Source: Macrostomum lignano (Eukaryota). Taken from it: a stretch of DNA of 64,000 nt. Below the pieces are notes generated by a model. That model worked only from the letters and a program-made list of their open reading frames with translations, had not been told where the DNA came from and did no database searches. The stretch is taken from positions 1 to 64,000 of the forward strand of contig NIVC01000712.1 of assembly GCA_002269645.1 (NCBI GenBank). Direction: 5' to 3'. Below are positions 23,263 to 60,365 of the stretch, piece by piece; the first letter of the stretch is position 1, and each line of letters opens with the position of its first letter. Made by a program: the position numbers and the translations under genes.

Positions 23263-26127
23263 ATGGCCGGTGTCGAGTGTCACTCAGGCTGGTTGCCTGA
23301 AGTCAATTGCGACAGTCGAGAGATCGAGAGAATTCTGAAAGAGCTACAAAATACAAACAATACATGGATGAAAGGTTTCTGCCAGCTTGCTATTGCCCAC
23401 CTGTATACTCTACCTGGCTTCTGTAATTTGACTGAAGCATGGAAGGCTCTGAATTCCGCCAGTCAGCCAGACGAAGAGGTAGAACATAACTTATTTACCC
23501 TACCGACCATTGACATTCGATTTCTTGCCACAGCAGTGAAACTAAGGCTTGAGAAAATGCAGCTAGGACACCCATCTAAGCACGAAGATTTAAAGAATGA
23601 ATTAACGACTTTATGGGCAGCTCAGGATGAGTCGGTGAAGGCGACTTGCTTGGTTGCCAAAGGCTGGACGATGCACTGGTTTGCAGTCGGACCGCAGCGA
23701 GACGAAGTTTTGAAAGTGTGCCACAAAGCATTGAAGGATGCTCAAAAAAAATTAGCCACTATACCTGATGCTGCTGATCAATTGAGTCATGTAACATTTC
23801 TCTGTCTGTTCGAGCTGGCTTGTACATTTTTCTGACGGCGAAAAGATGAGCAGAAAATTTTTCAGGAAGAACTTGACCTGTGGACTACTTCCAAAATGTT
23901 ATATGATGAAAACAAATGGAATCACCCGCTGTTTGAGCTTGAATTTCACAGGGCCGTCGCCTCCATTCCGCTGTACTTTGATGACTGCAGAACTTTCGCC
24001 GATGAGAAGTATTGTGAAATCATGAATAAGTCTAGCTTGTTGAATCAACTCTTTGAAGCTTATTGCACTCTTCCGGAAATCTACGACGTGCTGAAGAAAC
24101 AAAAAAAGGCAGAGATTTGGCACAGGATTTCGAAACTAAAGTAAGTAAATTGCTGGAAGAGGGAACCAATTTCAACGAATGTTCGATGCGTAAAAGATTT
24201 TTGCATCGAAGAATCGTGGCAGCTGATCTAGAGGACGCGATCGACATGCTCAAAAGTGAAGAGAACGAGTACTGGTTTGCCAATAGACTCATCATGCTAG
24301 AATTAAAATTGTATTTTGCTGATGAATCGATGTTCTCTTCTTGATTCGTTGAAAATTTCATGCAACGCTTCGAGTCTCTCTGCATTAATATTCCACTGAA
24401 GGCTTCAAAATTTCGCTTGAAAAAAGGCATATTTCTGTTGAAGTGCGGCAGAGTCAAAGAAGGAATGCACAGCCTCACCTGGGCAATGAACGACTATCTG
24501 CATTCTCCGTTAAGCTTTGAGCCTTCTAACTTTGTTAAGCTAAAGGATGCAGAGTCGTTTTTGAAGGATTCTGGATCTGATTTTTATCTGATTTGGATTG
24601 AAAGTCAGTTTAAAACTGATTTTAAGACTTACCACGTCGATGACTCTATTCAAAAGTACCGGACTGAGTTCACAAGGAAAGATCTGACGAACGAACATCG
24701 CCATTTCATCAGTGAGCACATCGGAAGGCTGCTGATGCAGAAGTCGCAGTTTGAAGAGGCGGAGCAAATGTTCAGGTCTCTGCCTGACGCACTAGAGCAC
24801 AAAAACGCAATGATTGCTGACTCTCTCTTGTGCCAGGCGGAGATTTTGTTGAGCGGTGATGACGCCACAGAAGTTTGCAAGGCCAAGCTACAGGAGTTTA
24901 AAGCACACCCAGATAATTCAGTTTACATAACCAGCATCGGGATGCGGCTGTACCTGCTGAACGAGTGTGCAAAGCTGGGCTGCAGAGACGCCATTCAAGA
25001 GGCGCTGCTTCTGCTGGAGGACATCCGGAAGCAGAGTGGCAGAGGTCACTTGTTGCAGCAAGCTCCAAACCATTTGTTCGTGCACAGCACTTGCGTTTAC
25101 GAGTTCTGCTCCCGGCTGCTTCAGCTGAGAGAGCAGGGCTTCCAAATTGAGCGAAGAAAAAGCTTTGTAGATTCTAGCGGTGACCAGATGGGTGACATGC
25201 TAGACAAAGTAGAGCAAATCTTGGCCACTGAGTTGTATCCAAGAAGAATTCGACTGAAAATGACACAGCTGAGCTTGAAGTATGAATCAGTAGAGGAAAT
25301 GCTTCAGAGTCCCGAGGCTGAGCGCAGCATTTGGCACACGCTGGAGGAGTCCCGAAAAGCACTCGATAGCTTCTGGGCTCAATTCGTCTCTAAATTGGAG
25401 AAGCAGGAAGTTGTCTCCGAGTCGAAGAGCGTTCCGAGATATTACCCATTTGCCCGCCATAGGCGGGCATCAGAGATTTGCTGTGTGACAACTAAGTCAT
25501 CATTACCTACATTTGCAACACAGAATTGCCTCTTATATGTGGCTTGTAATCCAACATGCTCAATTAAATTTAGACACGTGGCCTCAGGAGCTGCGAGCAC
25601 TGATTGACCGAATCCAGCCTCAGCCACAGCCGAGGCAACAGCAGCAGCAGAGACCATCCCAGCCGTCTTTTCGCTCTCCTTCGCAGCATGAGGCGCTGGC
25701 GGGGATTAGGGATCGGGATGCTTTCTACTCAACACAACATCAAGGAAGTTGGCGGTCAGCAATGGGTCAGTGCAGGGCTGCGCCATCTGCTGCTAAAGGT
25801 GAGGACGCTCTTGACTCATCACAACAGCAAGGAAGTTGGCGGTCAGCAATGGGTCAGCGCAGGGCTGCGCCATCTGCTGCTGAAGGTGGGGACGCTCTTG
25901 ACTCATCACAACAGCAAGGAAGTTGGCGGTCAGCAATGGGTCAGCGCAGGGCTGCGCCATCTGCTGCTGAAGGTGGGGACGCTCTTGACTCACCGCAACA
26001 GCAATGAAGTCGGCCGCCAGCAACATCAGGTCAGCAGAAGGACAAAATTCGCGACACAGAGAAGTCAGAGGGCCAGCAGAGCACTAAAAGCAACGGATTT
26101 GAGGATCCCCCTGAAGACGAAGGATAA
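23263..26127 (+). pseudogene. Copy A of IFIT-like/CCCH family: IFIT-like exon 1 (truncated at ~25462) joined to the intron before the Q-rich exon (25574-26127); zinc-finger exons deleted
   Basis: Near-identical to copy B up to CGCCATAG, then jumps to intron-3 sequence. TGA at 23833 and 24342; A7 versus A8 frameshift at 24101. Confidence 0.75.
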
Positions 26128-26300
26128 GCAATGCTTTAAAATGACTGTCTTTGCTGAATTTTTTCTGACTACTAAACTTGTACTTCCCCAAACTTCAGCG
26201 AATGATTATTCAGTAAAGCCACTGATTCAAAATCAGGCGTCCAATTTAAGGTAGCTAGCTAATCGTTAGCTGCAGCTTAAGGGCAGCGCAGCTTTGTCTT

Positions 26301-26316
26301 AATAAAATTCAATAAA
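26301..26316 (+). terminator. Candidate polyadenylation signals of copy A
   Basis: Two AATAAA hexamers ~175 bp after the last exon's ancestral stop. One is conserved in copy B near 45165. Confidence 0.4.
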
Positions 26317-26327
26317 ACACTGATTAA

Positions 26328-28327
26328 CAGTAGGAATACCAAGCCATTTTTCCGCCCGTCGAACTATCAAGGGGGGGGGGAAATTTCCCCCCCCTGACAA
26401 TTTTTTTTGCTGCGCCGGAACGGAGCAACGCAGGCACACGAAATTCAAGAACACGGGCTAACTTTTTGTTGCGCACCTTCTCAAACAAGAATCAAGTCGC
26501 CAGCCCTCCGGACCGTCGAGATATTCGACGATTCTGCCAGAAGGTCGGATTTTTCCCATAAGCGCTAGTGTATTCAGTACACCCCTGTGCGCCAATCAGC
26601 ACTGCGCCTCAGTGCAGCCTTGCCAAGTCTCCAAATTTCATCAGCACGTCGACCACATGTGTCTGCATCAGTTCTGACTTCGTTGGTCACTAGCCTTCAC
26701 CCAGGTGGAGCTTCTGGACCCTCAACAGCTGTGGCACCAGGTGACTATGGACACCCTGATGCGGATTTCTCTAGTTTCGCCGATCAAGCCTCGACAGTGG
26801 GCAAGAATCAACCGTCAGACATTCTCAGCTAGTCTCTCAAGCATTCCGTCATCATCCCGACGCATCAGGTGTCCTTGCTCACCTCGTGCCACCTGTTGAA
26901 GGTGCCCACGGTGTCGGGGTGATGACTGAAGGCTCCAGAGACTGGCTGAGAATGTCTGACGGTTGATTCTTGCCCACTGTCGAGGCTTGATCGGCGAAAC
27001 TAGACAGATTCTTATCAGGCTGTCCATAGTCACCTGGTGTAATCTGTTGAAGGAGCCGACGGCGTCGGGATGATGACGGAATGCTTGAGAGACTAGCTGA
27101 GAATGTCTGACGGTTGATTCTTGCCCACTGTCGAGGCTTGATCGGCGAAACTAGACAGATTCTTATCAGGCTGTCCATAGTCACCTGGTGTAATCTGTTG
27201 AAGGAGCCGACGGCGTCGGGATGATGACGGAATGCTTGAGAGACTAGCTGAGAATGTCTGACGGTTGATTCTTGCCCACTGTCGAGGCTTGATCGGCGAA
27301 ACTAGACAGATTCTTATCAGGCTGTCCATAGTCACCTGGTGTAATCTGTTGAAGGAGCCGACGGCGTCGGGATGATGACGAAATGCTTGAGAGACTAGCT
27401 GAGAATGTCTGATGGTTGATTCTTGCCCACTGTCGAGGCTTGATCGGCAAAACTAGACAGATTCTTATCAGGCTGTCCATAGTCACCTGGTGTAATCTGT
27501 TGAAGGAGCCGACGGCGTCGGGATGATGACGAAATGCTTGAGAGACTAGCTGAGAATGTCTGTCGGTTGATTCTTGCCCACCGTCGAGGCTTGATCGGCG
27601 AAACTAGAGAAATCCGCATCAGGGTTTCCATAGTCACCTGGTGTCATTTGTTGAAGGTGCCGACGGCATCGGGGTGATGACGGAATGCTCGAGAAACTAG
27701 CTGACAATGTCCATCGGTTAAGGTTTGCCCATTATTGAAGCTTGATAAGAAAAATCTAACATATTTGCAACAGGATGTCCATAGTCACCTGGTGTAATCT
27801 GTTGAAGGTGCCGACGGCGTCGGGATGATGACGGAATGCTTGACAGACTAGCTGAGAATGTCTGATGGTTGATTCTTGCCCACTGTCGAGGCTTGATCGG
27901 CGAAACTAGAGAAATCCGCATCAGGGTGTCCATAGTCACCTGGTGCCACAGCTGTTGAGGGTCCAGAAGCTCCACCTGGGTGAAGGCTAGTGACCAATGA
28001 AGTCAGAACTGATGCAGACACATGCGGTCGACGTGCTGAGGAAATTTGGAGACTTGGCAAGGCTGCACTGAGGCGCAGTGCTGATTGGCGCACAGGGGTG
28101 TACTGAATACACTAGCGCTTATGGGAAAAATCCGACCTTCTGGCAGAATCGTCGAATATCTCGACGGTCCGGAGGGCTGGCGACTTGATTCTTGTTTGAG
28201 AAGGTGCGCAACAAAAAGTTAGCACGTGTTCTTGAATTTCGTGTGCCTGCGTTGCTCCGTTCCGGCGCAGCAAAAAAAATTGTCAGGGGGGGGGGGAAAT
28301 TTCCCCCCCCCCTTGGTAGTTCTACTG
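26328..28327. mobile_element. 2.0-kb non-autonomous foldback element with TTAA target duplication
   Basis: TTAA|CAGTAG...CTACTG|TTAA, ~500-bp inverted arms and internal 151-bp tandem repeats. Absent at the paralogous site in copy B (~45187). Confidence 0.85.
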
Positions 28328-28486
28328 TTAATGACATCAACCAATACCTAACCAAAATGTACTCACGACTTGATCAGACCCAGATCTCCCACTGTATTCT
28401 ATCAATCTGGTCGTTCTATATTCGTGCGTTGGATTAAATTTGGCATACAAAGTGAACAAAAGGCCAAGAAAAGCAAAATTCAATTG

Positions 28487-28800
28487 GGCCTGGCCATAGA
28501 CTGCAGACACGTATTTATTCCTCACTTGGGCCCAGCCATAGACTGCAGACACGTATTTATTCCCCACTTGGGCCTGGTCATAGACTGCAGACACGTATTT
28601 ATTCCCCACTTGGGCCCAGCCATAGACTGCAGACACGTATTTATTCCCCACTTGAGCCTGGCCATAGACTGCAGACACGTATTTATTCCCCACTTGGGCC
28701 CAGCCATAGACTGCAGACACGTATTTATTCCCCACTTGAGCCTGGCCATAGACTGTAGACACGTATTTATTCCCCACTTGGGCCCAGCTATAGACTACAC
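28487..28800. repeat. 42-bp minisatellite (~7.5 copies), 3' flank of copy A
   Basis: GGGCCCAGCCATAGACTGCAGACACGTATTTATTCCCCACTT units. Confidence 0.9.
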
Positions 28801-29619
28801 AGAAGTATTTTTGCCTGGCGCAGTAAACCTCCAATGCTTAAATAATATTTTACTTTTTTTAACAGCTTTTTATCGGCTAGTCTATATTTACAAATATATA
28901 TTTGTGATGCAATATTACGTAATAACCTTTAGTCCTCCACTATGTAGCAAGCGCCGCACAGTCTGTACTTAAATTTTTAGTTTTTTAGATTTTTAGATTT
29001 TTAAAAAGTTGTATTAAAGCACGAAACAGTTAAAATCTGGTTTTATTTTTCGAGTCTCCGGTTTAAAGTTTGTACTTTTTTTCGAAACTTTCGCTGGTCA
29101 AGCCAGTTTGTGGCAGTTTTTTAAAACCGTTGAAATTTGTTTTGATTTTTCCAGTCTCTGGTTTACAGTTTGTGTTTTTAGGTAGGTTTGTCAGTCAAGC
29201 CGTTTTTGGCAATCAATCACTAACAATTAATTAATCCATAACTGTGAAATATCCTTTAACTCACTCCAAGCTTTAGCCCTTATTTATGGACTAATAGGTG
29301 TCAGGGTTAATAAGTGTTGTTTAACTGATTATGGCTGTGGATAATTTTATGCTACTATTATTATTATTATTATTTTGCTCGTATTATATTATAACTACTA
29401 TTTTATGTCTAGTCAGTTATCCTCAAGATTTTAATATGCATACTAATTATTCATATAAACTAATATATCGATATATGAGGCTACCGCTATCCCCATCCGG
29501 ATATGTCTGTCTCTGTCTACCTGTGTCGCAACGCTTATTGCGCAGCGGGAAAGGCACTTCAACATAAAGAGTCTAATATTGACGTTTTGAATTTTACTTT
29601 TGAAGCGACAGTATTACTG

Positions 29620-30200
29620 TAACCCTGAAGACGAAGAAAAAGAATGCCTTAGCTAGTTAGAGATTGTGTTTGCTGAATTTTTCCTGTCTACTAAAATTTT
29701 ACTTGCACTTTAGGTTATTTGCCTAAATCTGTGGAATAGCTTCCCAAAATCTAAGCGAATGATTATCCAGTTAAGCCACTAAATAATAATTCAGACGTCA
29801 AATTACAATAGCTAACTTTTTGGCAGTTTTTAGAACAGTTAAAATCTGTTTTCATTATCTAATCTCTGCTTTACAGTTTTCCTTTTTCGCTACTTTTGCC
29901 ATTCTAGCCAGTGTTTATGGCAGTTTTTTAAACACTAATAGGTGCATGGGCAGGGTTAATAAGTGTTGCTTCACTGATTATGGCTGTGGATAATTTTTGG
30001 CTACTAATATTTTTATCATCATATTATCATCATCATCATATTAATTATAAACTAATATATCGATATAAGGTTAACGCTATCCCTATCTGGATATGTCTAC
30101 CTGTGTTGCAACGCTTATTGCGCAGCCGAAAAAAGCTTCAACAGAGTCTAATATTGATGTCTTGAATTTTACTTTTTAAGCAACAGTATTACTGTTGGTA
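29620..30200 (+). pseudogene. Relic 3' end and flank of a further paralog
   Basis: CCTGAAGACGAAG...TTTGCTGAATTTTT...GCGAATGATTAT..AGT.AAGCCACT repeats the last-exon end/3'UTR of copy A (26110-26270), followed by a second copy of the downstream flank. Confidence 0.6.
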
Positions 30201-30599
30201 GTACTACAGTAGCAGTAGTACTTCGCCCCTTCAACTGCACACACTTGTGCTTGCTGATCAACGTCAGCAAATGCACTCTGTTGGAATGAGGTCCTTCCCA
30301 GCTGCTTCACAAGGATGTAGTGAATGTGTCGTCAGTGGAATGTCCATGCAAGATGTCTTCGAGCTATCGTAGATTCTCACTTTAAGATTTGTATCCAGTG
30401 CCTGTTCAACACGATGATGTCCTCTTGGTTCCATTGTTGTTTCTCTCATAGCTCGTATTAGGACTATATAAATATCGGATTGTGAGCTCTATATCTTACA
30501 ATTTCTCGTGCCGGATTCGCGCCAGTCGCCACAGCCTGATGAGCAGTGATGAATTGAGTTAGAAGCTGCTGGACGAGACTATGGATGTGCCATCATTTG

Positions 30600-30658: not shown

Positions 30659-30659
30659 T

Positions 30660-32538: not shown

Positions 32539-33600
32539 GGGTAGGTTTCACAACCGCTAAACTTCACAACCGCTAAACTTCACAACCGCTAAATCTCATC
32601 TACTTTCACAACCGCGAAACTTCACAAACGCTAAAATTTTTGCACTTACTTTCATATACAACAGTCTTTTTAGCGGTTGCGAAGTTTCGCGGTTGTGAAG
32701 TTTCGCGGTTGTGAAAGTAGATGACATTTAGCGGTTGTGAAGTTTCGCGTTTGTGAAGTTTAGCGGTTGTGAAGTTTCGCGTTTGTGAAGTTTAGCGTTT
32801 GTGAAGTTTAGCGTTTGTTAAGTTTAGCGTTTGTTAAGTTTAGCGTTTGTTAAGTTTCGCGTTTGTGAAGTTTAGCGTTTGTGAAGTTTAGCGTTTGTGA
32901 AGTTTAGCGTTTGTTAAGTTTAGCGTTTGTTAAGTTTAGCGTTTTGAAGTTTAGCGGTTGTGAAGTTTAGCGTTTTGAAGTTTCGCGGTTGTGAAGTTTA
33001 GCGTTTGTTACGTTTAGCGTTTGTGAAGTTTAGCGTTTGTTAAGTTTAGCGTTTTGAAGTTTCGCGGTTGTGAAGTTTAGCGTTTGTTAAGTTTAGCGTT
33101 TGTGAAGTTTAGCGTTTGTTAAGTTTAGCGTTTTGAAGTTTCGCGGTTGTGAAGTTTAGCGTTTGTGAAGTTTAGCGTTTGTGAAGTTTAGCGTTTGTGA
33201 AGTTTAGCGTTTGTGAAGTTTAGCGTTTGTTAAGTTTAGCGTTTGTTAAGTTTAGCGTTTGTGAAGTTTAGCGTTTGTGAAGTTTAGCGTTTGTGAAGTT
33301 TAGCGTTTGTGAAGTTTAGCGTTTGTTAAGTTTAGCGTTTGTGAAGTTTAGCGTTTGTGAAGTTTAGCGTTTGTGAAGTTTAGCGTTTGTTAAGTTTAGC
33401 GTTTGTTAAGTTTAGCGTTTGTGAAGTTTAGCGTTTGTTAAGTTTAGCGTTTGTGAAGTTTAGCGTTTGTTAAGTTTAGCGTTTGTGAAGTTTAGCGTTT
33501 GTGAAGTTTAGCGTTTGTGAAGTTTAGCGTTTTGAAGTTTCGCGGTTGTGAAAGTAGGTGATTTAGCGGTTGTGAAATTTCGCGTTTGCGAAAGCAACCC
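32539..33600. mobile_element. Asymmetric foldback (MULE-like) element with 8-bp TSD
   Basis: CTTTCTTC|GGGTAGGTTTCACAA...TTGCGAAAGCAACCC|CTTTCTTC. Short left arm and ~900-bp right arm made of inverted 16-bp units (TTTAGCGTTTGTGAAG). Confidence 0.85.
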
Positions 33601-34761: not shown

Positions 34762-37314
34762 CAGGGAATTCTCCAGACCTGGAAGTGACACTGGCAAAAT
34801 CGGGCCCGGGTGCCCGGGCCAAGTCAGGCCATTCATTTTTGGCTATGAAGGGACAAGAGAGGAACCGACTGAGTGTGGGAAGAGTGAATGAAAAGAAGAT
34901 GGGGGTGTAAGATAAGGGGGAAGGAAGAAATGTGCATTTGGGAAAGAAGAAAAAGAACTGAGGAAGATTGCAGACAAAGACATTATGCACAATTGTACAT
35001 GTACGGAACAAAAAGTTCTATGCACAGCCTACCTACTTTTGCCCTTCTTGGGTGTACGTTTTTTATACGCTCGTATAAGTCTTCGCACGAAGTTCCCAAG
35101 TTGCTCATTTTGTATTACATGCAAAGATAAATCATGGGTTACAAGTGCTGTGTGTTCGGCTGCAAATCAGGCTATTCGTCAGAAGGAACTGTGGGAATAA
35201 GCTATTTTGCTTTCCCAAAGGATCCTGTACTGAGACAGCAGTGGCTTCGTGCTATACCAACCGCCGACCTGAAGGCCACGTCTTCTCAGCGTGTCTGCTC
35301 GAAGCACTTCACGGAAGCTGACTTCGTCAGAGAATCAACCGACAAGACCATCCGTCGTAAGAATCGAAAATTCTTAGAAGCGAAGCTCCAACAAGTTCGC
35401 CTGAAGAGTGCTGCAGTGCCAACTCAATTTGACAGTGTGCCGAAGTACCTCAGCAAGTCAGCGCCAATGGAGTGGACTACAAGTGCCTTGTCCTCATCTC
35501 GTCTGCAAGTGGAGAATGCGCGTTTGAATGAGATGATCGGCGAATTTCTAAGCTCTGATGAGTTGCGTACTCTCAGTGACCTGCTAGACAAGTTGGATTC
35601 AGCCAATATTCCATCCGGATTTGTAAGAAGCACCAACGCTGGATCAGCTTCGTTTTTCCTAATCGACACATCCATCTCAGGCTCCGCTCCACACCTCACA
35701 GCTTCACTGACTGTCTTTGAAGATCTCACGTATCAGGCATTTGTTTGTGGCCTTCGCTGTACTAGCAGCATGCTTGGACATCTGTTTCCAAAGCAGCAAG
35801 ACACCCTCCATCTGCAGCTGCTCTCCACTTTTGAGAACCTGCTGGCATTCCTCAAATCTCTGGCCCAGACAGGAGAGACACGTGATCCCATCACGTCGTC
35901 TGATTTCGTGGAGGAGGTTTTGAAGAGCTACCTCGGATCTCTGAGCGATGAATCAGATGTTCAAGGACAAGTGAAGTTCCTTCTCGAGCAATTTTCCCTG
36001 ATCCACACCCAGGGGCCGTCTCGTCGCTATACGCCAACAACAACAGTACTGGCGTATTTGATTTTTTCAACTAGCCGCGCTGCCTACAAGGCAATTCTGG
36101 ACGATGGGTCCATTTGCTTGCCCTCTATCAGGAATCTCGTTAGGCTGACATCCGTTCTTTCCAAGGAGTCTGGCATCGTGGAAGAGGCGTACATTCAGCT
36201 GCGGGCAGGATCGCTTGACCCTCGAGAGAAGTATGTGGTCCTCATCATCGACGAGGTGACCACCGCGAAGAGAGTGGAATTTAACTGCGACTCCATATAT
36301 GGTCTCAGCAGCGATGGCAAGGTGGCTTCCTCTATTCTGGCGTTTCTCGTCAAGTCAATCGGTGGGTCCTACCAGGATGTCGTTGGTCTTTTTCCGGTCA
36401 ACTGTCTTACAGCCAGCCACCTGAGTAGCCTTGCTGGTGATGTAATTGAGGCGGTCGCGAAAAACGGGTTTGAAGTCGTTGCTTTGTCCTGTGACAATTC
36501 GGCCGTCAATCGGAAATTTTACTCGATGTCTGCCGCTAACGATGACGGTTTGACTATGAAGCATCCCTGTGACAAAGAGAAGGAGATTTTCCTGCTGATG
36601 GATACGACCCACAACATCAAGAATGTGTATAATAATTTTCAACGGCGGAGGGAGTTTCACTGCCCAACCATGGATGGACAGGAGTGCTTCGTCGCCAAGT
36701 TTAGCGACATCGAGGCCGTGTTTGAAATTGAGAGAGGCCAGTCGTCCAAGATCGCCTACCGGTTGACAGAGAAGGTTCTGCGCCCACTGAATGTTGAAAG
36801 AACGAGTGCGTCTCTGGCCGCAGCTGTGTTTGATGAAACAACGGTTTCTGCGTTGCAGCTGTACTCAACCATGCAGAGTGTGAACGTAGACACATCAACC
36901 TTCAACAGCACGGCCAAGTTTCTTTCCAAGGTCAATCGTCCTTCCCTCGTTGGCAAGCGAAGATCTGATGGCCTGAAGGGCAACGACAGCTGCCGAAAAA
37001 TTGCCAAGTTAAACCCCTAGTTCCGGACCACTTCCTTCTGTTGCTTTTCCCTTCACATCCTGGCTTCTGACAGTTTTTGGTAAGTTTGAATGGCAATGCC
37101 TACTATCTGATGCTATTTCTATTGTGTGCAGTACGAGTATAATGATAACTCGAATTCTAATTTTTTATGTTTGTAAGTAACAAATTAAGGGGTCTTTAAT
37201 TTGCTTGCAACATCGATATGCATGAACTGGGCTGGGCTCAGGCTCGGAAGAGGTCGGCCTGACTTGGCCCGCCCCCATTGGCCAGTGTCACTTCCAGGTC
37301 TGGAGAATTCCCTG
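34762..37314 (+). mobile_element. P-element-superfamily transposon (THAP transposase), 2553 bp
   Basis: Perfect 34-bp TIR CAGGGAATTCTCCAGACCTGGAAGTGACACTGGC, inverted subterminal GGGCCAAGTCAGGCC, 7-bp TSD ATCTGTC. Confidence 0.92.
35134..37020 (+). CDS. THAP-domain P-element/THAP9-like transposase, probably C-terminally deleted
   Basis: THAP motif CCVFGC...FPKD...QWL...RVCSKHF...AVPT; IIDEV; CDNSAVNRK; DTTHNIKN.YNN. Ends before the expected D.LE..F..R catalytic segment. Confidence 0.88.
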   Translation: MGYKCCVFGCKSGYSSEGTVGISYFAFPKDPVLRQQWLRAIPTADLKATSSQRVCSKHFTEADFVRESTDKTIRRKNRKFLEAKLQQVRLKSAAVPTQFDSVPKYLSKSAPMEWTTSALSSSRLQVENARLNEMIGEFLSSDELRTLSDLLDKLDSANIPSGFVRSTNAGSASFFLIDTSISGSAPHLTASLTVFEDLTYQAFVCGLRCTSSMLGHLFPKQQDTLHLQLLSTFENLLAFLKSLAQTGETRDPITSSDFVEEVLKSYLGSLSDESDVQGQVKFLLEQFSLIHTQGPSRRYTPTTTVLAYLIFSTSRAAYKAILDDGSICLPSIRNLVRLTSVLSKESGIVEEAYIQLRAGSLDPREKYVVLIIDEVTTAKRVEFNCDSIYGLSSDGKVASSILAFLVKSIGGSYQDVVGLFPVNCLTASHLSSLAGDVIEAVAKNGFEVVALSCDNSAVNRKFYSMSAANDDGLTMKHPCDKEKEIFLLMDTTHNIKNVYNNFQRRREFHCPTMDGQECFVAKFSDIEAVFEIERGQSSKIAYRLTEKVLRPLNVERTSASLAAAVFDETTVSALQLYSTMQSVNVDTSTFNSTAKFLSKVNRPSLVGKRRSDGLKGNDSCRKIAKLNP

Positions 37315-37752
37315 ATCTGTCTCTGTGTCGCGGAGGTGGGCGGGCGTCTTTTGGAGGGGCTTTTATTTTTGCCCCGGGCAGCTCAGACCCGGCTGCTTAG
37401 TTTCGCTCTTGAACACGCAATTTTTCCTTCGACTTCATTTGTCCTTTTTAATCCCCAAACCTATCGAAATTGAGAGCAATAAATATATTCGATTTATCAC
37501 TGGATAACCTCCTTCCTGTCCTTCCTCGGCGTCGTTCGCTAAAAGTACGTTACTGCAATTGGGAAGAAAAAAGTGTTACCTGTCCCCCTTTTCCAGTGTT
37601 CTTTTCCGAAAATTTTTCTACAATATAGTCAGGTTGTAAATTTCAGGGTACGAGCTTGCTAGATTCCTGGCGAGGTTTCAGTCACTAGCAGCTCAAAATT
37701 CAGAGACGATTGGACTCAGATTCTCGACTTCCCGGTCGCTGAGACCTGCTGA

Positions 37753-40594
37753 ATGGCCGGTGTCGAGTGTCACTCAGGCTGGTTGCCTGAAGTCAATTGC
37801 GACAGTCGAGAGATCGAGAGAATTCTGAAAGAGCTACAAAATACAAACAATACATGGATGAAAGGTTTCTGCCAGCTTGCTATTGCCCACCTGTATACTC
37901 TACCTGGCTTCTGTAATTTGACTGAAGCATGGAAGGCTCTGAATTCCGCCAGTCAGCCAGACGAAGAGGTAGAACATAACTTATTTAACCTACCGACCAT
38001 TGACATTCGATTTCTTGCCACAGCAGTGAAACTAAGGCTTGAGAAAATGCAGCTAGGACACCCATCTAAGCACGAAGATTTAAAGAATGAATTAACGACT
38101 TTATGGGCAGCTCAGGATGAGTCGGTGAAGGCGACTTGCTTGGTTGCCAAAGGCTGGACGATGCACTGGTTTGCAGTCGGACCGCAGCGAGACGAAGTTT
38201 TGAAAGTGTGCCACAAAGCATTAAAGGATGCTCAAAAAAAATTAGCCACTATACCTGATGCTGCTGATCAATTGAGTCATGTAACATTTCTCTGTCTGTT
38301 CGAGCTGGCTTGTACATTTTTCTGACGGCGAAAAGATGAGCAGAAAATTTTTCAGGAAGAACTTGACCTGTGGACTACTTCCAAAATGTTATATGATGAA
38401 AACAAATGGAATCACCCGCTGTTTGAGCTTGAATTTCACAGGGCCGTCGCCTCCATTCCGCTGTACTTTGATGACTGCAGAACTTTCGCCGATGAGAAGT
38501 ATTGTGAAATCATGAATAAGTCTAGCTTGTTGAATCAACTCTTTGAAGCTTATTGCACTCTTCCGGAAATCTACGACGTGCTGAAGAAACAAAAAAAAGG
38601 CAGAGATTTGGCACAGGATTTCGAAACTAAAGTAAGTAAATTGCTGGAAGAGGGAACCAATTTCAACGAATGCGCGATGCGTAAAAGATTTTTGCGTCGA
38701 AGAATCGAGTCAACTGAATCAAAGACTGCAATCGAATTGCTCAAAAGTGAAGAGAACAAATGGAAGAACGAGTACTGGTTTGCCAATAGACTCGTCGTGC
38801 TAGAAATATTGGTAGATGATTCACTGGTTGAAGATTTCATGCAACGGTTCGAGTCTCTCTGTACAAACTTTCCATTAATGGAATCGGAAATGCGCTTAGA
38901 AAAAGGCATATTTCTGTTGAAGTGCGGCAGAGTCAAAGAAGGAATGCACAGCCTCACCTGGGCAATGAATGACTATCTGCATCCTCCGCTAAACTTTAAG
39001 CCTTACTACTCTAGCAAGCTAAAGGATGCTAAAGCTAAAGCTAAAGTCGTTCTTGAAGGATTCTGAGCGTGATTTTTATCTGATTTGGATTGAAAGTCAG
39101 TTTAAAACTGATTTTAAGACTTATCACGTCGATGGCTCCATTAAAAAGTACCGGACTGAGTTCACAAGGAAAGATCTGACGAACGAACATCGCCATTTCA
39201 TCAGTGAGCACATCGAAAGGCTGCTGATGCAGAAGTCACAATTTGAAGAGGCGGAGCAAATGTTCAGGTCTCTACCTGACGCACTAGAGCACAAAAACGC
39301 AATGATTGCTGACTCTCTATTGTGCCAGGCGGAGATTTTGTCGAGCGGTGATGACGTCACAGAAGTTTGCAAGGCCAAGCTACAGGAGTTTAAAGCACAG
39401 CCAGATAATGCAGTTCACATAACCAGCATCGGGATGCGGCTGTACCTGCTGAACGAGTGTGCAAAGCTGGGCTGCAGAGACGCCATTCATGAGGCGCTGC
39501 TTCTGCTGGAGGACATCCGGAAGGAGAGTGGCAGAGGTTACTTGTTGCAGCAAGCTCCAAACCATTTGTTCATGCACAGCACTTGCGTCTACGTGTTCTG
39601 CTCCCGGCTGCTTCGGCTGAGAGAGCAGGGCTTCCAAATTGAGCGAAGAAAAAGTTTTGTAGACTCTAGCTGTGACCAGATGGGTGACATGCTAGACAAA
39701 GTAGAGCAAATCTTGGCCACTGAGTTGTATCCCAGAAGAATTCGACTGAAAATGACACAGCTGGGCTTGAAGTATGAATCAGTAGAGGAAATGCTTCAGA
39801 GTCCCGAGGCTGAGCGCAGCATTTGGCACACCCTAGAAGAGTCCCGAAAAGCGCTCGATAGCTTCTGGACTCAATTCGTCTCTAAATTGGAGAAGCAGGA
39901 AGCTGTCTCCGAGTCTAAGAGCGTTCCGAGATATTACCCATTTGCCCGCCATAGCTGTGATCTGAAAAGCAGCACTGAAAGCTTTTCAAACATTTTCAAA
40001 AACAATTGGAGCGATCAAGCAAAACTGTTTACTTCACTACTTCAAAGCTTGAAAAGCACAATTGAATGCCTCGACAAGGCTAAGGAGGAGGGACACGAAC
40101 TTAATGAATGCTTGAATGCTCTGGAAAATATTGACGAAGCTAAGTTAAAAGATGAAGTATCAGATGATCAGCTAAACGATTTCAAACATAAACTGGAGAA
40201 GCTCAAGAAATTTCGCAACACTGCGACAAGTTCCGCATGTAGTAGTCAGTCAAAGCAAGCAGGCTCAATCGACAGGCTTAGAAATTCCAGTGAGAAATTT
40301 AACGAAATGCTACAGAAACCATTCCCACTCGCGTTTCGAGCGAATGACGAAGTCTGTAAATGGATGATCCGGAAGGAAGAAGCCATTGATTCTAACCAAG
40401 GTTGTTGGCATGTACACTGGTGCAACGAAGTCAACTCAGATAAGCACGATGAGCAGGTTAATCTTGCCAAATTCAACGAAAAAATAAAAAAAAGATTTAA
40501 TCAGAAGCAGAGTGGGCCAGTAGATGTTCTGGCTTTGGCTCATTGCGCTGCGGAATTCGCTGAAGAGGCCAGGCTCGTTCTCGAAGAGTACACG
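37753..40594 (+). CDS. Copy B exon 1: IFIT-like TPR region plus helical/coiled-coil region (in-frame TGA at 38323, frameshift ~39030)
   Basis: VECHSGW, AKGWTMHWF, DLTNEHRHFISEHIERLL. Ends at the strong donor ACG|GTAAGT. Confidence 0.7.
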
Positions 40595-45770: not shown

Positions 45771-48389
45771 TGGCGCAATAAAGCTTCAAAACTTTATAAA
45801 GTTTTATTTCTTTTATCAGCCTTTTTATCGACTTGTCTATATTTGCTAATCTATATTCGTGATCTGCAATATTACTTAATTACCTTCAGTCCACCACTAT
45901 TATAATAATTAAATAAGCGCCGTGCAGTCGGTACTTTAATTTTACATTTTTTCATTTTAAAAATTGTATTGAAGCACGAAACAGTTAAAATCGATTTTTA
46001 TTTCTCGAGTCTCCGGTTTACAGTCTTTGCCTTTTTCGGTACTTTTGCTAGTCAAGCCAGTTTATGGCAGGTTTTTAAACCGTTGAAACTTTTTCCAGTC
46101 TCTGGTTTACAGTTTGTGGTTTTCTCGCGGTAGGTTTGTTAGTTAAACCATCTTTGCAATTACCAGTTTATTAACCATAACTCATAATTGCAATATCCTT
46201 TAAACTCCCTCCAAGCTTTTGCCGTTATGTATGCACTAATAGGTGGCAGAGTTATTAAGTGTTGCTTCACAGACTATGGCTGTGGATAATTTTATGCTAC
46301 TAATTTTTTATCATCATAACTTTTCCATATCTTCTCGGCTATCCGCAAGATATTTATATGCATATTAACTATAAACTAATACATCGATATATGAGGTTAA
46401 CGCTATCCCCATCTGGATATGTCTACCGGCCTGTGGGGCTACGCTTATTGCGCATCTGAAAAGAAGCTTCAACAGAGTCTAATATTGATGTCTTGAATTT
46501 TACTTTTTAAGCAACAGTATTACTGTTGGTAGTACTACAGTACGAGCTAGCAGTAGTACTTCGCCCCTTCAACTGCACACGCGTGTGCTTGCTGATCAAC
46601 GTCAGCAAATGCACTCTGTTGGAATGAGGTTCTTCCCAGCTGCTTTACAAGGAAGTAGTGAATGTGTCGTCAGTGGAATGTCCATGCAAGATGTCTTCGA
46701 GCTGTCGCAGAGTCACTCTTAGACCTGCACCCAGTTTCCGTTGAACACGATGATGCACGTGCTTTTTTCTATTGCTGAAGTTCTATCATAGCTCGTATTA
46801 TATAAATATCGGCTTGCGAGCTTCAGATATAGAGTTTTCTAGTGCTCAACAAACTGCGACATGTATATAGTAGTCTCAGAAAGAATATAATTGAGTTACT
46901 ACACATTTCATAGTATCTTGAAACTGTTGCTCAACTTGATCCAACTCGTCCAGAAAAGTCTGTCGACCTGTGGCTTCTTGCCGAAAGAGTGCGTCATAGA
47001 ATGCATTGAGCAGCTTCATTTTATGTGCTAGTCGTGTTCTGTAGTGGCTGCACCGGATGCTTTGAGCCGCTGCTCCGCCTAATGATTGATGGTCATGACT
47101 TCGTATTGAAAAAACGTTCGAGACGTTCTCACCAAGATGAAGGTCACAAGGTCACCACATCAGGCCCTTGCCGAAAGCCATGGCCACATGGCAATGCCTT
47201 CGCATACGTAGGGATCCGTCAGTGAAGCTACGCGTTGGAATGGTGCACTTTGATGTATTGACGACTGTGACGATATGGGGGAGTGGGAGTAAGCGCGTGC
47301 TCTCAGCAATAAGCTCAAAGGGTAATGAATTTATCACAGTTTAAACTCGTTGCACCTTTTATTGCCTCAGCTCGGATAATCATGCAGGTGCAGCGGTGGC
47401 AATTTGAGATGGTGTTGAGCCTATCGTAGGGGGTAGATGGGTACGGATGGCTCGGCAGATGCTACTGTTCTGTTGCACGAAGGAAAAAGAAATCAGAGAA
47501 CGAGCCTATCTATTTTGAAGTTTCGCAATCCAGGTTCTGGTTTTAGGCGTCCTTGGCTCAGCGCTGTGACCAAATGAAGGGATATAGGGCTGTTTACGCG
47601 GGTTTGTGCCAGACGTGCACTATAAGAACAAAGAGATAGAATATTCTTACTCCGCGCGCTGGGCGGAGGGGTTTTATTTTAGCATTAAAAAACTGGACCG
47701 CAACATTGTGTTCCCCATAGTTCGCATATTTGTGCTTCCATTTATTTTGGCCTCAACCGACCGCTGAGTTAGTTTAGGGTGGCCCTGAAAAGGGCCGTTT
47801 GACTTTCCAGTCACCTCTTAATACACAATAGCTAGTCTGCAGCTGGTGCAGTCGGTGCAGCCGGTCCCGCATTGTCTTCAGCTCAAACGCCGCTGGACCA
47901 GACGAAACACGCGTAAGCGATGCTGAATCGGATGATATCCGTGTAGATCCACTGGACCGTCTGTGGAGAGAGCTCCCATGCAGGCAGGCGCAATGTCTCT
48001 CATTTGTGCAGAGCATCACTTAATTAGCGCACCCGATGACATTGACAACATGCTTGGTCCAGCGGCGTAGATCATGCGTGAGCGTTACGACTCGTACAGT
48101 TCAAGGACGACTGAAAAAATCTATATATCTACTTACCTACTTCAAGCAATCTAATTAAGTAGTCCTTAAAGCGTTTCACCTAGGCATTTTGTTTCTTGTG
48201 GGATTTCCTTTCTATAGATGGTGTCTCGCATGCTCCACCACTTCCGCTTTCTGGTGAAAATAATGGCCACCGTCGTCTTGGCGGTTGCTAATTTATAGTG
48301 AGGCAATGTTGGGTGGCCCCAATGTTGGGGCGAACTGCTGCATCAGGTTAATTCCGGAGAAAGCTGGTGTTCAGGGCCACTGAAAAAAG

Positions 48390-49613: not shown

Positions 49614-49647
<34 letters not shown>

Positions 49648-54760: not shown

Positions 54761-57645
54761 ATGGCCGAGGGCTTGTTCGAAAGCTTTGACGAAATCGAGT
54801 GCCACTCCAAGTGGCTGCCCGAGCTCAATTGCGACAGCCAAGAAGTTGACAAAATCCTCGAGGAGCTCCATTGGCAAAGCGACAATTATCCTTGGCTGAA
54901 AGGTTTATGCTTGCTCGCCATCGCGCACCTGCACACTCTGCCAGGGTCATGTGACATCGAAAAGGCACGAGAGAAACTCGAATCGATTAAGCCGTGTGAA
55001 GCAGTTTCAGGTGATCTGCCACAGCCGGATGTTAAATTTCTAGTTAAAGCAATGGAGCTCAAACTTCGAATAATGGAGTCACAACCAAGTCTGCCATCCA
55101 AATACAAAGACCGGCTGGAGGAATTGTCAAACCTGTGGAAAGATAAGTCAGTTCAGGCCACTTGCTTTGTTGCCAAAGGCTGGACAATGCACTGGTTTGC
55201 TGTCGGCAATAATCGAGAGGATTCTTTCCAAATTTGTGCTTCGTCTTTGTTAAAAGCGAAATCAATTATTGAAGGCGTAACTGGTGAAACTGAGAAGCTT
55301 AAAGTGGTTGAATTTATCTGCCTGTACAGTTTGGCGTTCGCCTTCTTCCGGAGACGAGAAAATCACCATCGACTGTGCAATGATGAGTTTGTCTGCTGGG
55401 ACAATGCGTACAAAATTTTGACAGACAAAGAGTGGCGGCATCCAATTTTCTTGCTGGAGTTCGCTAGGGCAGTCTCTTGTTCACCTGGTCACGTAGAGTT
55501 GTGCAAAAAACTGTTAGCGGAAGAGAAAAAAAATCGAGAACAACAGGAGAAGTATTATCAAACGTACATCATTTTGCCGGATATATTTTCGTGGCTGAAG
55601 AAGACACGAAAAAATGATACATTTTTGATCGAACTTGAAAAGATATCAGCAGTTTGCTTGAAGAAGGAAGAAAAATCGAAAAACTACAACAACATAAAAA
55701 ATTTTTGCGTCGAATAGTTGAGTTTCTAATCAGCTGCTCAAGACGAGAAGACGCCAGAGAGCTGTTGCAGAACACAAAGGAGGAGAGGAACACAGAGCTC
55801 TATAGGCCATCCAGCAAATACTGGTTCGAAATAACGCTGATCGCTTTAGAAATACCCAAAACAGCCAAGGGATGCCAGAAGCTACAGCCTAAAGAGATCG
55901 AATCCTTCCTATACCGACTAGAAAACCTGTGCACAAACGTTCCGTCAAAAGCAAGGCAAGTTCGACTGACAAAAGGCATTTTTTTAATAAAGTGCGGCTA
56001 CATCGATGAGGGCATGAAGTGCTTAGCGTGGGCCATGAATGACTACCTGCATCCAGCACAAAGCTTCAAGCTTTTTGCCAAAAGAAATTAAAGAAGCTAA
56101 AACGGTTTTAGAAGAAACAACGGACAAAAAAAGTACCTGAATTGGGTTGAAAGTCAATTCGAAACTCATTCGGCATTTTATCACGTCGATGACTCGATAC
56201 AAAAGTACCAGACTGAGCTGAATAGGCAGGATTTAACAGAAGATGAGACATTTTTCATTACCGAGCACCTCGGAAGGCTGCTGTTGAGGAAGTACAGGTT
56301 TGAAGAGGCGGAGCAAAAGTTCAGGTCTCTGCCTGAGGCTCTGGAGCACAAAAACGCAATGATTGCTGACTCCCTCTTGTGTCAGGCAGAGAGCTTGTCG
56401 AGCGGTGATGACGTCACAGAAGTATGCAAGGCCAAGCTACAGGAGTTTAAAGCACAGCCAGATAATGCAGTCCACACAACCAGCATCGGGATGCGGCTGT
56501 ACCTGCTGAACGAGTGTGCAAAGCTGGGCTGCAGAGACGCCATTCATGAGGCGCTGCTACTGCTGGAGGACATCCGGAAGCAGAGTCACAGAGATCACTT
56601 GTTGCAGCAAGCTCCAAACCATTTGTTCCTGCACAGCACTTGCGTCTACGTGTTCTGCTCTCGGCTGCTTCGGCTGAGAGAGCGGGGCTTCCAAATTGAG
56701 CGAAGAAAAAGTTTTGTAGACTCTGGCGGTGACCAGATGGGTGACATGCTGGACAAAGTAGAGCAAATCTTGGCCACTGAGTTGTATCCCAGAAGAATTC
56801 GACTGAAAATGACACAGCTGAGCTTGAAGTATGAATCAGTAGAGGAAATGCTTCAGAGTCCCGAGGCTGAGCGCAGCATTTGGCACACGCTGGAGGAGTC
56901 CCGAAAAGCACTCGATAGCTTCTGGGCTCAATTCGTCTCTAAAGTGGAGAAGCAGAAACATGGCTCCCAGTCTAAAGCGATATATTATCCATATTATCCA
57001 TTTGCCCGCCGTGATTTGAAAAGCAGCAATGATAGTTTTTCAAACCTTTTCAAAAACAATTGGAGAGATCAAGCAAAACTGTTTACTTCACTGTTGCAAA
57101 CCATGAAAAGCACTGTTGAATGTCTCGACAAGGCTAATGAGAACGGAGTTGAAATTAATGCATGCGTGAAGGATCTGGAAGATATTGACGAAGCTAAGTT
57201 AAAAGATGAAGTGTCAGATGACCAGCTAAACGATTTCAAACAGCAGCTGGAGAAGCTCAAGCAATTTTTCAACCCTGCTACCACTGACCCAATTAAGTCA
57301 AATCAATTAGCAGGCTCAATCAAGAGGCTTAGAAATTCCAGTGAGAAATTTAACGAAATGCTACAGAAACCATTCCCACTCGCGTTTCGAGCGAATGACG
57401 AAGTCTGTAAATGGATGATACGGAAGGAAGAGGCCATTGATTCTAACCACGGTTGTTGGCATGTACACTGGTGCGACGAAGTCAACTCAGATAAGCACAT
57501 TTATCCGGTTGATGTTGCCAAATTCAACGAAAAAATCAAAGAAAGATTTAATCAGAAGCAGAGTGGGCCAGTAGATGTTCTGGCTTTGGCTCATTACGCT
57601 GCGGAATTCGCTGAAGAGGCCAGGCTCGTTCTCGAAGAGTACACG
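54761..57645 (+). CDS. Copy C exon 1: IFIT-like TPR region plus helical region; three 1-bp indels, all in homopolymer runs
   Basis: AGCATGG start. LFESFDEIECHSKW, AKGWTMHWF, EFICLYSLAFAFFRR, DLTEDETFFITEHLGRLL. Donor ACG|GTAAGT. Confidence 0.75.
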
Positions 57646-58820
57646 GTAAGTTTTTCTTAATTCTATGTTTTAAGAATCAAAGTATCTGTTTTTTGATTAG
57701 ACATTGTAAAATGGAGATCACCAAACAAAGATGATTCAAATGCTGTTTTTAAGCTCTTTTCGATAGTGTAGCAGGTGTAATTTTACTTATTTGTTCGATC
57801 TCGCAATTTCCACTAAATACCACCAAGTTGTAGCAGATTTATTTGTTCTGCCTAATTGAATCACTCCGTTTGTCAACAAGTTACCAACGTATGACTCTTT
57901 TCTAGGAAATTTCCTGATTCACTAGATTTCTTTGGTAAGACACTGTTCTAAATTCATAAATTAAGCCCGAAATTACAGCGTTTCCGGGGACCAAGGGTGT
58001 CCGGCGGCGAGCCTTAATACCTAATATTTGTCTGTCTTCTAATGCCTAATAATTAACATCTAATCTTATGACCTTCTTAATACCCCTTGAGGCTGTACGG
58101 CTTTATCTCTACTGGGTCTGTTCGACCTCTATTGCCTGTGCGGCCTTTTTCCTACTTCTGGGTCTGTACGACCTTTATTGCCTGTACGGTCGTTTCCCTA
58201 CTTCTGGGATAAGAAATGAATAAGCAAAGATCATCTGTCAGCAGAAATTTCCTTTATCAAAAGAGGCAAGCTAGGAACAAACTGGAGCTTGCTCAAGTTA
58301 GCTAGTTTTATTTTCATGCCAGGCGAAGCCTTTTTATAGTATAGTAAACAAACGTGTGGGGTGCATCGTAATTGGCGGGGACAACTTAAAACAAAATTAG
58401 ATGAAAATTTTATCAGAAATAGGATTTACAACAAATAATACCGTATTAAAACAAAAAATTTATTTTTGGTTGCTAAATTAGCAACCATTGCGATTTTTGG
58501 TCGCATGTAGCTACTTATAGTAATGAAATGGGGATTGGCAGACCCCACTTTAATAGCGAAAGGTAGACGTGTGAAATACTTTGCTAAGCTATGATATCAG
58601 CATAAATTTAAATTCACCTAGAAGCTCGGCTGGAAATAAAAAATACGGATTCTATTCAACTTTTTCTATTCTCAAACACTGTTTTCAAGCTCTTATAGAT
58701 TAATTTGAGAACCGAAAGTAGTGGGTTAAAATTTGCATACATTTAATTTACCGACTGATTTATAAGACTCGGTTTACAACCAATATACCCTTGTATCATA
58801 AAACTAAATTCGATTTGCAG

Positions 58821-59460
58821 TACCCAGAGGTAACCATTCCAACGAAGCCAGACGCCATCGGTGAAAACTTCGAGTGGAGCCTTGTCTGCTACTCGTGTGC
58901 TCAGCCGAACGACGTCTTGCGCAGCAGATGGAGCCGCTTGCAGAATGAATGTGCCAACTGTGACAAGTGCATTCTGCTGGTCAGAGAGAAGGCCAGTGCG
59001 GCACCAAGTGACGTTTGGCAGCGGGTCCGACCCAGACCAAGGAAACTCGTCAAGCTGGACATGTGCAGGAGATACAGCGATATAGAATCCTGCAACGGCT
59101 GCAAGCGTTCTGAATGCGACTTTGCCCATGGAGATGCGGAGCTGCGGCTGTGGGAGCTGGAGAGAATCGGCAAGTTCTCCTTCAACAAGCTGCTGAAGTC
59201 CAATCGATCAGCTGGGTCAGAACTGCCGCTGATTCTCTGGGAGCGGCCTGCGGTCGAAGAAGGCTCGGAGACCCGAATTTTCTACACGGGTCTTAAGCCG
59301 CTTATTCCTGCCAGACTCCCTGTGAAAGCACAAAATTCATTCTGCTATTCGCTCTGCAACTCGCTACTTGAAGGAACTGAGTGCCAGTATCAAGGCAAAT
59401 GCTTCAATGCTCACTGTGCTGAGGAGGAGCAGCTGTGGAACATCATGCAGCAGAAAAGAG
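58821..59460 (+). CDS. Copy C exon 2: zinc-finger module 1, intact
   Basis: Same acceptor and donor as copy B exon 2; 640 bp, phase 0 to phase 1. Confidence 0.8.
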
Positions 59461-59602
59461 GTAAAATCGAGATTCTTACAGAATTCTAATCTTTACGTTA
59501 TAATATTGAATAATAATTTACGAGTATATGGGATAAAGTTCAAGTGTGTTACGTATAATAACAAAGAGTTAACGTTCGAATTACAATCCAATAACCGTTC
59601 AG

Positions 59603-60006
59603 ATAATTGGCCCGAACAGCTGGCTTCAAGAAATCGACAAAATCGAGCCCGAACTCATTCATTGGTTGGAGCTCGAATCGAGCTGCGACTACAAGCTGAC
59701 CTGCTACAGGTGCTCCGAATCACTGGATCCTCTGAGAAGCAGATTCAAGCTGAAGGAAACACAGAACTGTGAGCGGTGCGACCAGAGCATCCTGCTGGTC
59801 AGATCGAAGAACAATCAAATCAACAAGTGGCAACGCATCCGAGACAGACAAGGACATCTGGTCATATGTGATCTCTACCAATCAAACAAATGCAGGCGCT
59901 CCGAATGTGACTTCGCTCATGGCGATGTGGAACTGAAGCTGTGGAAGCTGGAGAGAATCGGCAAGTTCTCTTTCAACAAGCTGCTGAAGTCCAATCGATC
60001 AGCTAT
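59603..60006 (+). CDS. Copy C exon 3: zinc-finger module 2, second finger lost, +1 indel near 59630
   Basis: ttcag|ATAATTGG acceptor. Homology stops after KSNRSA at a possible new donor AT|GTAAGA. Confidence 0.65.
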
Positions 60007-60176
60007 GTAAGAAGTGTATTCTTAGTTACCAGAGATATACTGTGTGGCGACTAAATCATGTTACCCTTCCCATTCTAATCGAGAAACACATTTTTGTGGC
60101 CTCATTACCCACATGTACAACACAGTATTGCCTCTTATACCAGTGGCTCGTATCCAACACGCCCAATTAAATTTAG

Positions 60177-60365
60177 AGAAATGGCCTCAGGAGCTGCGAG
60201 CACTGATCGACCAAATCCAGCAGTCTCAGCCACTGCAGCAGCAGTAGCAGCAAGGAAGTCGTCAAGCTGAAGTTTGGGATCCTCTTACCCACCATAACAG
60301 CAAGGAAGTCGGCCGCCAGCAACAGCAGGTCAGCAGGACAAATTTGCCAGCAGAGCTCCAAGAGA
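60177..60365 (+). CDS. Copy C exon 4: shortened Q-rich tail
   Basis: aatttag|AGAAATGGCCTCAGGAGCTGCGAGCACTGATCGAC conserved with copies A and B. The reading frame depends on which donor is used. Confidence 0.5.

Follow-up and report, generated by a model that had tools for sequence, protein, structure and literature searches.

The window analysed here, the first 64,000 nucleotides of contig NIVC01000712.1 from the flatworm Macrostomum lignano (assembly Mlig_3_7), carries three tandem, same-strand paralogs of a gene with a large exon, which starts at 23263 in copy A, 37753 in copy B and 54761 in copy C. The encoded protein combines an N-terminal tetratricopeptide repeat (TPR) region related to the IFIT proteins with CCCH zinc fingers of the type found in ZC3H7B and HELZ2. 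All three copies fit within 37 kb and were located by self-comparison, in which 23038-25462 of copy A aligned to 37531-39954 of copy B with 92% nucleotide identity, and 38901-42816 of copy B aligned to 55971-59994 of copy C with 86.7% nucleotide identity over ~4 kb. A preliminary description, made from the sequence alone, had proposed a local tandem expansion of a ~950-codon exon, followed in B and C by two finger exons and a glutamine-rich (Q-rich) exon, and the expansion, the three paralogs of the large exon and the two finger exons after each of B and C are indeed present. The features of the three copies are:

23263-25460 (+): copy A, truncated exon-1 pseudogene with the IFIT-like N-terminal region and part of the middle; homology stops at 25460
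25574-26007 (+): copy A, terminal-exon remnant, DTWPQELRALIDRIQPQPQPRQQQQQ..., which runs into an 87-bp tandem repeat at 25727-26023
37753-40594 (+): copy B, exon 1, with the IFIT-like TPR region, middle and C-terminal domain; GTAAGT donor at 40595
41684-42320 (+): copy B, exon 2, first finger module (C4 knuckle, W..VRPRPR, CCCH, linker, second CCCH); joined to exon 1 in the P0063 and P0002 models
42423-43058 (+): copy B, exon 3, entire second finger module, which continues the exon 2 frame; linker DNWPEHLVLRIDKIEPELIGW...
44589-44794 (+): copy B, terminal exon, EKWPQELRALIDRIPPQQQPRQQQQQ..., with a Q-rich tail; its phase fits the exon 3 donor
54761-57645 (+): copy C, exon 1, ~961 codons; ATG at 54761, GTAAGT donor at 57646
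58821-59457 (+): copy C, exon 2, first finger module (ZC3H7/HELZ2 type); CAG acceptor at 58820, phase 0; joined to exon 1 in PAA78005.1
59606-60010 (+): copy C, exon 3, shortened second finger module ending ...KSNRSAM*; matches PDB 2d9m
60177-60247 (+): copy C, terminal-exon remnant, EKWPQELRALIDQIQQSQPLQQQ*

Only copy C retains a full-length exon 1 (~960 codons), whereas copy A is cut off at 25460, with the final third of its exon 1 and all finger exons missing, so that the large exon proposed for all three copies is complete in C and not in A. The splice sites around exon 1 and exon 2 of copy C are canonical. In copy B the exon 1-2, exon 2-3 and terminal-exon junctions are all in frame and agree with the models P0063 and P0002 from the ML2 assembly (P numbers here and below are our identifiers for retrieved proteins). 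A linker of the form (D/E)xWPxxLxxLIDxI opens every finger exon as well as the terminal exon, a short exon with the sequence EKWPQELRALID... that is found in A (25576), B (44591) and C (60179). The Q-rich reading of this terminal exon is in phase with the exon 3 donor in copy B; in copy C the Q-rich frame reaches a stop after 23 codons and the paralog P0066 uses another frame.

None of the three copies has a clean open reading frame (ORF) in this assembly. Copy A is a pseudogene, with a TGA at 23833-23835, a frameshift near 24108, a stop at 24342-24344 and a deletion that joins exon-1 codon ~730 to the terminal-exon region, which removes the C-terminal domain and both finger exons. Copy B has a TGA at 38323-38325 in common with copy A, and thus this lesion is older than the A/B duplication; it also has a frameshift caused by an (AAAGCT)n insertion at ~39045, and its ORF is open from an ATG at 39026 to the donor at 40595 and on through both finger exons. 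Copy C is nearly intact. Three 1-nucleotide indels at A-runs in its exon 1 (55642, 56080 and 56132) interrupt the frame only in the present assembly, and the same reading frame is open in another assembly (P0001). In the linker that opens exon 3, one additional A and a duplicated CATT shift this exon out of the exon 2 frame in the present assembly, and a 1.6-kb deletion relative to copy B cuts finger module 2.

Translated conceptually, copy C matches the M. lignano UniRef entry A0A1I8J5T1 along 100% of its length, with 98% identity; this entry is annotated as a 'C3H1-type domain-containing protein', and the public names of these proteins are merely 'C3H1-type domain-containing' or 'hypothetical'. 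GenBank PAA78005.1 (BOX15_Mlig023181g1) is 100% identical to window positions 56359-57645 plus 58821-59462, and PAA56471.1 (P0066) is an intact paralog of 1521 amino acids on another contig, with three finger modules. Both proteins cross the exon 1/exon 2 junction exactly at the predicted splice sites. The Mlig_3_7 annotation was built from StringTie/TACO RNA-seq assemblies together with a de novo transcriptome, and TransDecoder was used to call its ORFs (PMC5730564). According to these RNA-seq-based models, the gene family is real and transcribed, and exon 1 and the finger exons are spliced together in transcripts, contrary to one of the outcomes that the preliminary description had named as refuting it; the length of P0066 also agrees with the ~1500 residues proposed in the preliminary description. 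One further M. lignano entry, P0054 (UniRef A0A1I8JIK7, 4203 amino acids, named 'AMP deaminase'; an ML2 model), contains the IFIT-like N-terminal domain at 973-1194 and the C-terminal domain at 1763-1846, and is probably a merged gene model.

In the copy C protein, residues 1 to ~610 form the IFIT-like TPR solenoid, with ECHSKW at residues 13-18, residues ~650-860 form a helical middle region, and residues ~880-960 form a conserved C-terminal domain. All three regions, and the ATG, lie inside a single 2.9-kb exon. Across the family these are followed by 1-3 downstream modules of ~210 residues, each consisting of a C4 zinc knuckle and two CCCH fingers. No part of the family is better conserved than the C-terminal domain (~85 residues; copy C residues 880-960, encoded at ~57400-57645), in which the motifs W-x3-W, N-x2-K-H and A-H-x-A-A-E-F-x-E are invariant and which is found in unfused homologs too. 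A profile of this domain had no match in PDB or Pfam. A HEPN-like reading of its N..KH motif was considered and dropped, since the arginine is absent and no match supported it.

An exhaustive HMMER search against 1.84 billion representative proteins returned 50 matches, seven of which cover the N-terminal region. Two of these are from M. lignano (P0006 and P0028) and five (P0009, P0010, P0018, P0019 and P0044) are from eukaryotic contigs of ENA ERZ25074608, which have 35-39% GC and no nucleotide similarity to the window. All of the seven except P0028 have the N-terminus LECHFTW or LECHF[KN]W, the hallmark of IFIT proteins: P0006 carries it exactly, as LEELECHFTW, and the variant LECHF[KN]W occurs in the five ENA proteins. 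At this position the window copies C, A and B read ECHSKW or ECHSGW. The C, H and W are invariant across the family alignment, and align to C18, H19 and W22 of IFIT5. The reference sequences used here were identical to PDB entries, IFIT5 to 3zgq_A over 482/482 residues and IFIT2 to 4g1t_A. The four IFIT5 motifs quoted in the preliminary description are all present in 3zgq_A, and the four window motifs set beside them are all found in the window sequence.

BLASTP aligned residues 7-188 of P0006 to residues 13-188 of IFIT5 (38.9 bits, E=7e-7). When the family N-terminal profile (237 positions) was searched against the PDB (177,635 distinct sequences), IFIT5 was the sole significant match (E=7.1e-4), and weaker matches were to a designed helical protein (E=0.064) and IFIT3 (E=0.95). 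P0006 alone matched IFIT5 (E=1e-3) and IFIT2 (E=0.023) in the PDB. Alignment of the family to IFIT5, IFIT1, IFIT2 and mouse Ifit2 with hhalign gave probabilities of 94-98%, and with the hallmark removed (first 24 and 28 residues off) the probability was 92% (E=6e-7); in contrast, reversed alignments gave 0.2-0.3%, ZC3H7, itself a TPR protein, gave 0.1%, and IFIT against ZC3H7 gave 0.8%. Further downstream, residues 294-346 of copy C are collinear with IFIT5 232-282 (hhalign 56%). An AlphaFold2 (AF2) model of residues 1-610 is all helical, with a predicted local distance difference test score (pLDDT) of 77.4 and a predicted template modelling score (pTM) of 0.64. When this model was compared to the PDB with Foldseek, IFIT1 took ranks 1, 2 and 4 and IFIT5 took ranks 6, 8, 9 and 14; these matches have the highest template modelling (TM) scores of the list (0.47-0.52 by target; IFIT5, 0.50-0.52) and the lowest root-mean-square deviation (~10 Å for IFIT5). 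Judged from these alignments, the first ~180 residues are specifically IFIT-related, covering subdomain I and the first part of subdomain II, and the rest of the solenoid is collinear, very divergent TPR. The IFIT homology proposed in the preliminary description therefore stands for ~180 residues of the N-terminal region, which match IFITs better than any other TPR protein in the PDB, the comparison it had set in advance as its test.

Compared to the vertebrate IFITs (IFIT1, IFIT2, IFIT3 and IFIT5), the flatworm family has in common the hallmark with its invariant C, H and W, the ~180 collinear homologous residues, with the remainder matching weakly in the same order, and a predicted all-helical TPR solenoid that comes closest to IFIT1 and IFIT5 in the structural comparison. 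The gene organization is also alike: IFIT genes have nearly all of their coding sequence in one exon and lie in tandem clusters (PMC3688568), and the IFIT-like part of the flatworm genes likewise lies in a single large exon in a tandem cluster, with signs of gene conversion. The flatworm protein differs in that its helical part is 960 rather than ~480 residues long, with insertions, the helical middle and the novel C-terminal domain, in that it is fused to zinc-finger modules, and in that its resemblance to IFITs lies below what Pfam or InterPro can detect.

Each finger module has the order CxxC...CxxC, W..VRPRPR, a CCCH finger ending AHG.AEL.LW.LER, a ~60-residue linker and a second CCCH finger ending AHCAEEEQLWNIM. 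HMMER searches with the modules found frog ZC3H7B (P0013 and P0014) and a protein from Batillaria (P0011), with E values of 1e-10 to 1e-12; the latter carries RNB, AAA_11/AAA_12 and OB_HELZ2 domains and is thus HELZ2-like. In the PDB, the modules match 2d9m, a ZC3H7A finger, with E=1e-3. Furthermore, the ZC3H7B protein consensus reproduces the ZC3H7 finger pattern quoted in the preliminary description. On these matches, the finger exons are true ZC3H7B/HELZ2-type modules, and the earlier designation of ZC3H7/HELZ type is supported, with a nearest helicase relative that is HELZ2-like rather than HELZ.

The modules share with ZC3H7A/ZC3H7B (RoXaN) the repeated zinc knuckle, the W..(I/V)RPRP motif and a CCCH finger ending AH..EE...W..ER, with E values down to 1e-10. 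In contrast, the N-terminal TPR regions are unrelated (hhalign 0.1%), the number of modules is different, and in the flatworm each module has its own exon, appended on the 3' side of a gene family that otherwise stands by itself. There is also no C2H2 jaz-type finger: zf-C2H2_jaz is seen in the ZC3H7B matches, and not in P0001 even at E values up to 10. The flatworm module matches the N-terminal modules at residues 139-270 and 412-533 of the HELZ2-like protein from Batillaria with E=4.5e-12, whereas by Pfam the flatworm protein lacks the helicase (AAA_11/AAA_12), RNB and OB_HELZ2 domains of HELZ2. The same knuckle and CCCH module also occurs in five or six tandem copies in proteins of 1450-1590 residues from M. 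lignano (P0007/P0057-P0061) and from a further source (P0008/P0062), in which no IFIT-like or ZC3H7-like TPR region was detected. These multi-module proteins may be the donor family of the finger exons.

With three profiles applied to all retrieved proteins, the N-terminal or C-terminal domain was found together with fingers in M. lignano only, a restriction that is limited by the fragmentary nature of the gene models from outside Macrostomum. Within M. lignano the fusion occurs in at least four paralog groups (P0001/P0066, P0002/P0063, P0004 and P0005/P0064). Unfused members are P0006, P0056 and the ENA homologs P0009, P0010 and P0055, all of which stop right after the C-terminal domain, and at locus L001 there was no finger match within 8 kb downstream of the homolog. 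Word-indexed profile searches returned little beyond P0001, P0018 and P0044 and missed proteins identical to query rows (P0006 and P0009 among others), and were not usable for determining distribution. The domain combination appears nowhere else in the searches that were run, which covered the 1.84 billion representative proteins, unfused relatives exist elsewhere, and because of this distribution the fusion looks like a Macrostomum innovation that arose by accretion of 3' exons. On one of the ENA ERZ25074608 contigs (L002), the IFIT-like homolog P0018 has a Tudor-domain gene (4756-6654) 3.3 kb upstream of it.

The preliminary description had called the family fast-evolving. Pairwise ratios of nonsynonymous to synonymous substitution rates (dN/dS) are 0.13-0.50, with no positive selection in the pairwise comparison, which indicates that the family is under constraint by purifying selection, and its evolution is not uniformly fast. 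Between copies B and C, the N-terminal 190 codons are saturated at synonymous sites (dS 3.2, dN/dS 0.13), and dS is 0.21 in the 3' half of exon 1 and 0.08 in exon 2. This fall in dS from 5' to 3' indicates that gene conversion or unequal crossing-over has made mosaics of the copies. The large N-terminal distance that separates A and B from C reflects an old divergence, and the 3' parts have been homogenised.

Taken with the homologies of the two parts, RNA binding is the most likely activity of the protein. We consider the chances somewhat better than even that the locus is a tandem, partly decayed cluster encoding a modular IFIT-like TPR and CCCH protein whose predicted role is RNA capture. 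The CCCH modules would bind RNA, and the IFIT-like solenoid would provide a further scaffold that binds RNA or partners. In this way the protein could capture particular cytoplasmic RNAs, for which viral or transposon RNAs are obvious candidates, and the captured RNAs might be sequestered or handed to decay or translational repression. RNAs with 5'-triphosphate (5'-ppp) or cap0 ends would probably not be read in the way they are by IFIT1 and IFIT5.

Several observations weigh against this interpretation. CCCH and IFIT homologies suggest RNA binding without proving it, and in the window A and B are pseudogene-like or disrupted at the 5' end and C has frame breaks in the assembly. No Pfam TPR or zf-CCCH model scored above threshold on copy C or P0001, so that annotation pipelines cannot see the homology; Pfam does detect TPR in P0006. 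The full-length exon-1 profile matched only consensus or designed TPRs in the PDB, at profile positions 452-507, and full-length copy C matched nothing in the PDB except the ZC3H7A finger. These profile matches fall at the 'EHLGR' repeat, which was one of the four collinear motif matches to IFIT5 in the preliminary description; that match is thus generic TPR, and the N-terminal register is the part that is IFIT-specific. The margin in Foldseek E values is small (IFIT1, 5.1e-4; Ctr9, 7.8e-4; OGT, 1.2e-3), and the TM scores are only ~0.5. Finally, the IFIT RNA tunnel, named in the preliminary description, is not supported. We compared the IFIT5 pocket residues K150, R186, R253, Q41, T37, Y250 and K415 (mutational list, PMC9677429 Table 5) in a global hhalign alignment of eight family members, which is uncertain past ~residue 220. 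R186 is kept, as R or K in 7/8 members, and the position of Y156 is aromatic in 5/8. However K150, the strongest IFIT5 triphosphate contact, is replaced by W, C or S in all eight, and Q41, T37, E33 and K415 are not conserved. The poor conservation of the triphosphate/cap pocket makes IFIT1/IFIT5-style recognition of the RNA 5' end unlikely for the flatworm protein, and weakens the case for a shared mechanism while leaving that for homology unaffected.

Some of these points would also be expected if the N-terminal region were a generic TPR solenoid in a lineage-specific TPR and CCCH protein, with the CH.W motif and the collinearity with IFITs arising by convergence or chance. The TPR-only matches of the full exon-1 profile, the silence of Pfam on copy C and the closeness of Ctr9 and OGT to IFIT1 in the Foldseek list all fit such an explanation, as does the conclusion of Liu et al. 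2013 that IFITs are restricted to jawed vertebrates and that invertebrate TPR or BLAST matches are not true IFITs (PMC3688568), the one relevant report that we found in the literature on these loci or on invertebrate IFIT-like genes. We nevertheless regard it as improbable, because IFIT5 alone was significant in the PDB with the N-terminal profile, the register begins at the N-terminal motif in both families, and the high hhalign probability persists without that motif, compared to 0.1-0.8% for the reversed and TPR-containing ZC3H7 controls. Very much less probable is that the gene is simply the flatworm ZC3H7A/B ortholog, which would account for the order of N-terminal TPRs followed by CCCH fingers and for finger modules that are clearly homologous. 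This candidate was rejected, in agreement with the preliminary description, on the basis of the 0.1% hhalign alignment of the exon-1 family to ZC3H7 and the missing zf-C2H2_jaz finger; in addition, the helical region has 960 residues compared to ~200 in ZC3H7, and there are members of the exon-1 family without the fusion.

A serious rival, if on balance an unlikely one, is that the homology and architecture are right and that the protein regulates endogenous RNAs, such as germline, neoblast or miRNA-processing RNAs, a role of the kind proposed for ZC3H7, rather than acting in immunity. CCCH proteins and ZC3H7 have housekeeping RNA roles, the IFIT5 triphosphate pocket is not conserved, and with dN/dS below 1 there is no overall sign of an arms race. 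On the other hand, tandem expansion, many paralogs, pseudogenes and gene-conversion mosaics are typical of defence families, and absence from most of the animals searched would be unusual for a core regulator. IFIT and HELZ2 are both interferon-stimulated antiviral genes in vertebrates, and we know of no interferon system in flatworms. The interferon-stimulated relatives, tandem expansion, pseudogenes and patchy distribution among animals are compatible with defence, although circumstantial, and an antiviral or anti-transposon role for the IFIT-like and CCCH protein is speculative.

If the IFIT-specific similarity in a protostome is correct, it would make the IFIT domain older than interferon, a re-dating of the kind recently made for the Mx, viperin and cGAS-like genes. 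We tentatively entertain a possible, though rather doubtful, extension of this idea, in which the IFIT fold predates both interferon and jawed vertebrates, and the flatworm family is a surviving protostome IFIT branch used for antiviral or anti-transposon RNA surveillance, with recognition shifted from the lost triphosphate pocket to the CCCH modules. The protein would then combine parts of two vertebrate interferon-stimulated gene families, and the fusion provides a concrete hypothesis that is testable in a transgenic animal amenable to RNA interference (RNAi).

The window as a whole is eukaryotic, and rich in transposons and satellites; it contained no match to Rfam. One intact-looking transposase ORF sits between copies A and B, outside the gene family and as part of the repeat-rich spacers:

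35134-37020 (+): THAP-domain, P-element/THAP9-like transposase ORF, 628 amino acids (Pfam THAP, 1e-18; TNP-like RNaseH, 7e-13)

Upstream of the cluster, a 972-amino-acid ORF with reverse transcriptase and RNase H at 1555-4473 (+) is a retroelement, and a piggyBac-like transposase (DDE_Tnp_1_7 and zf-Tnp_2) at 15865-17389 (+) is spread over two overlapping ORFs, which indicates a frameshift. The first 6 kb of the window have a GC content of ~55%, compared to ~44% for the remainder. Large tandem arrays are found at 13157-14166 (period 15 bp), 26864-27945 (151 bp), 28484-28810 and 45312-45771 (42 bp), and 32727-33552 (16 bp). The 42-bp satellite and its flanks are repeated downstream of A and B (28420-30488 and 45245-46822), and thus the duplicated unit includes the spacer. 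Downstream of copy A, the 151-bp array is flanked by a 509-bp inverted repeat with 98% identity between its arms (26358-26863 and 28325-27817).

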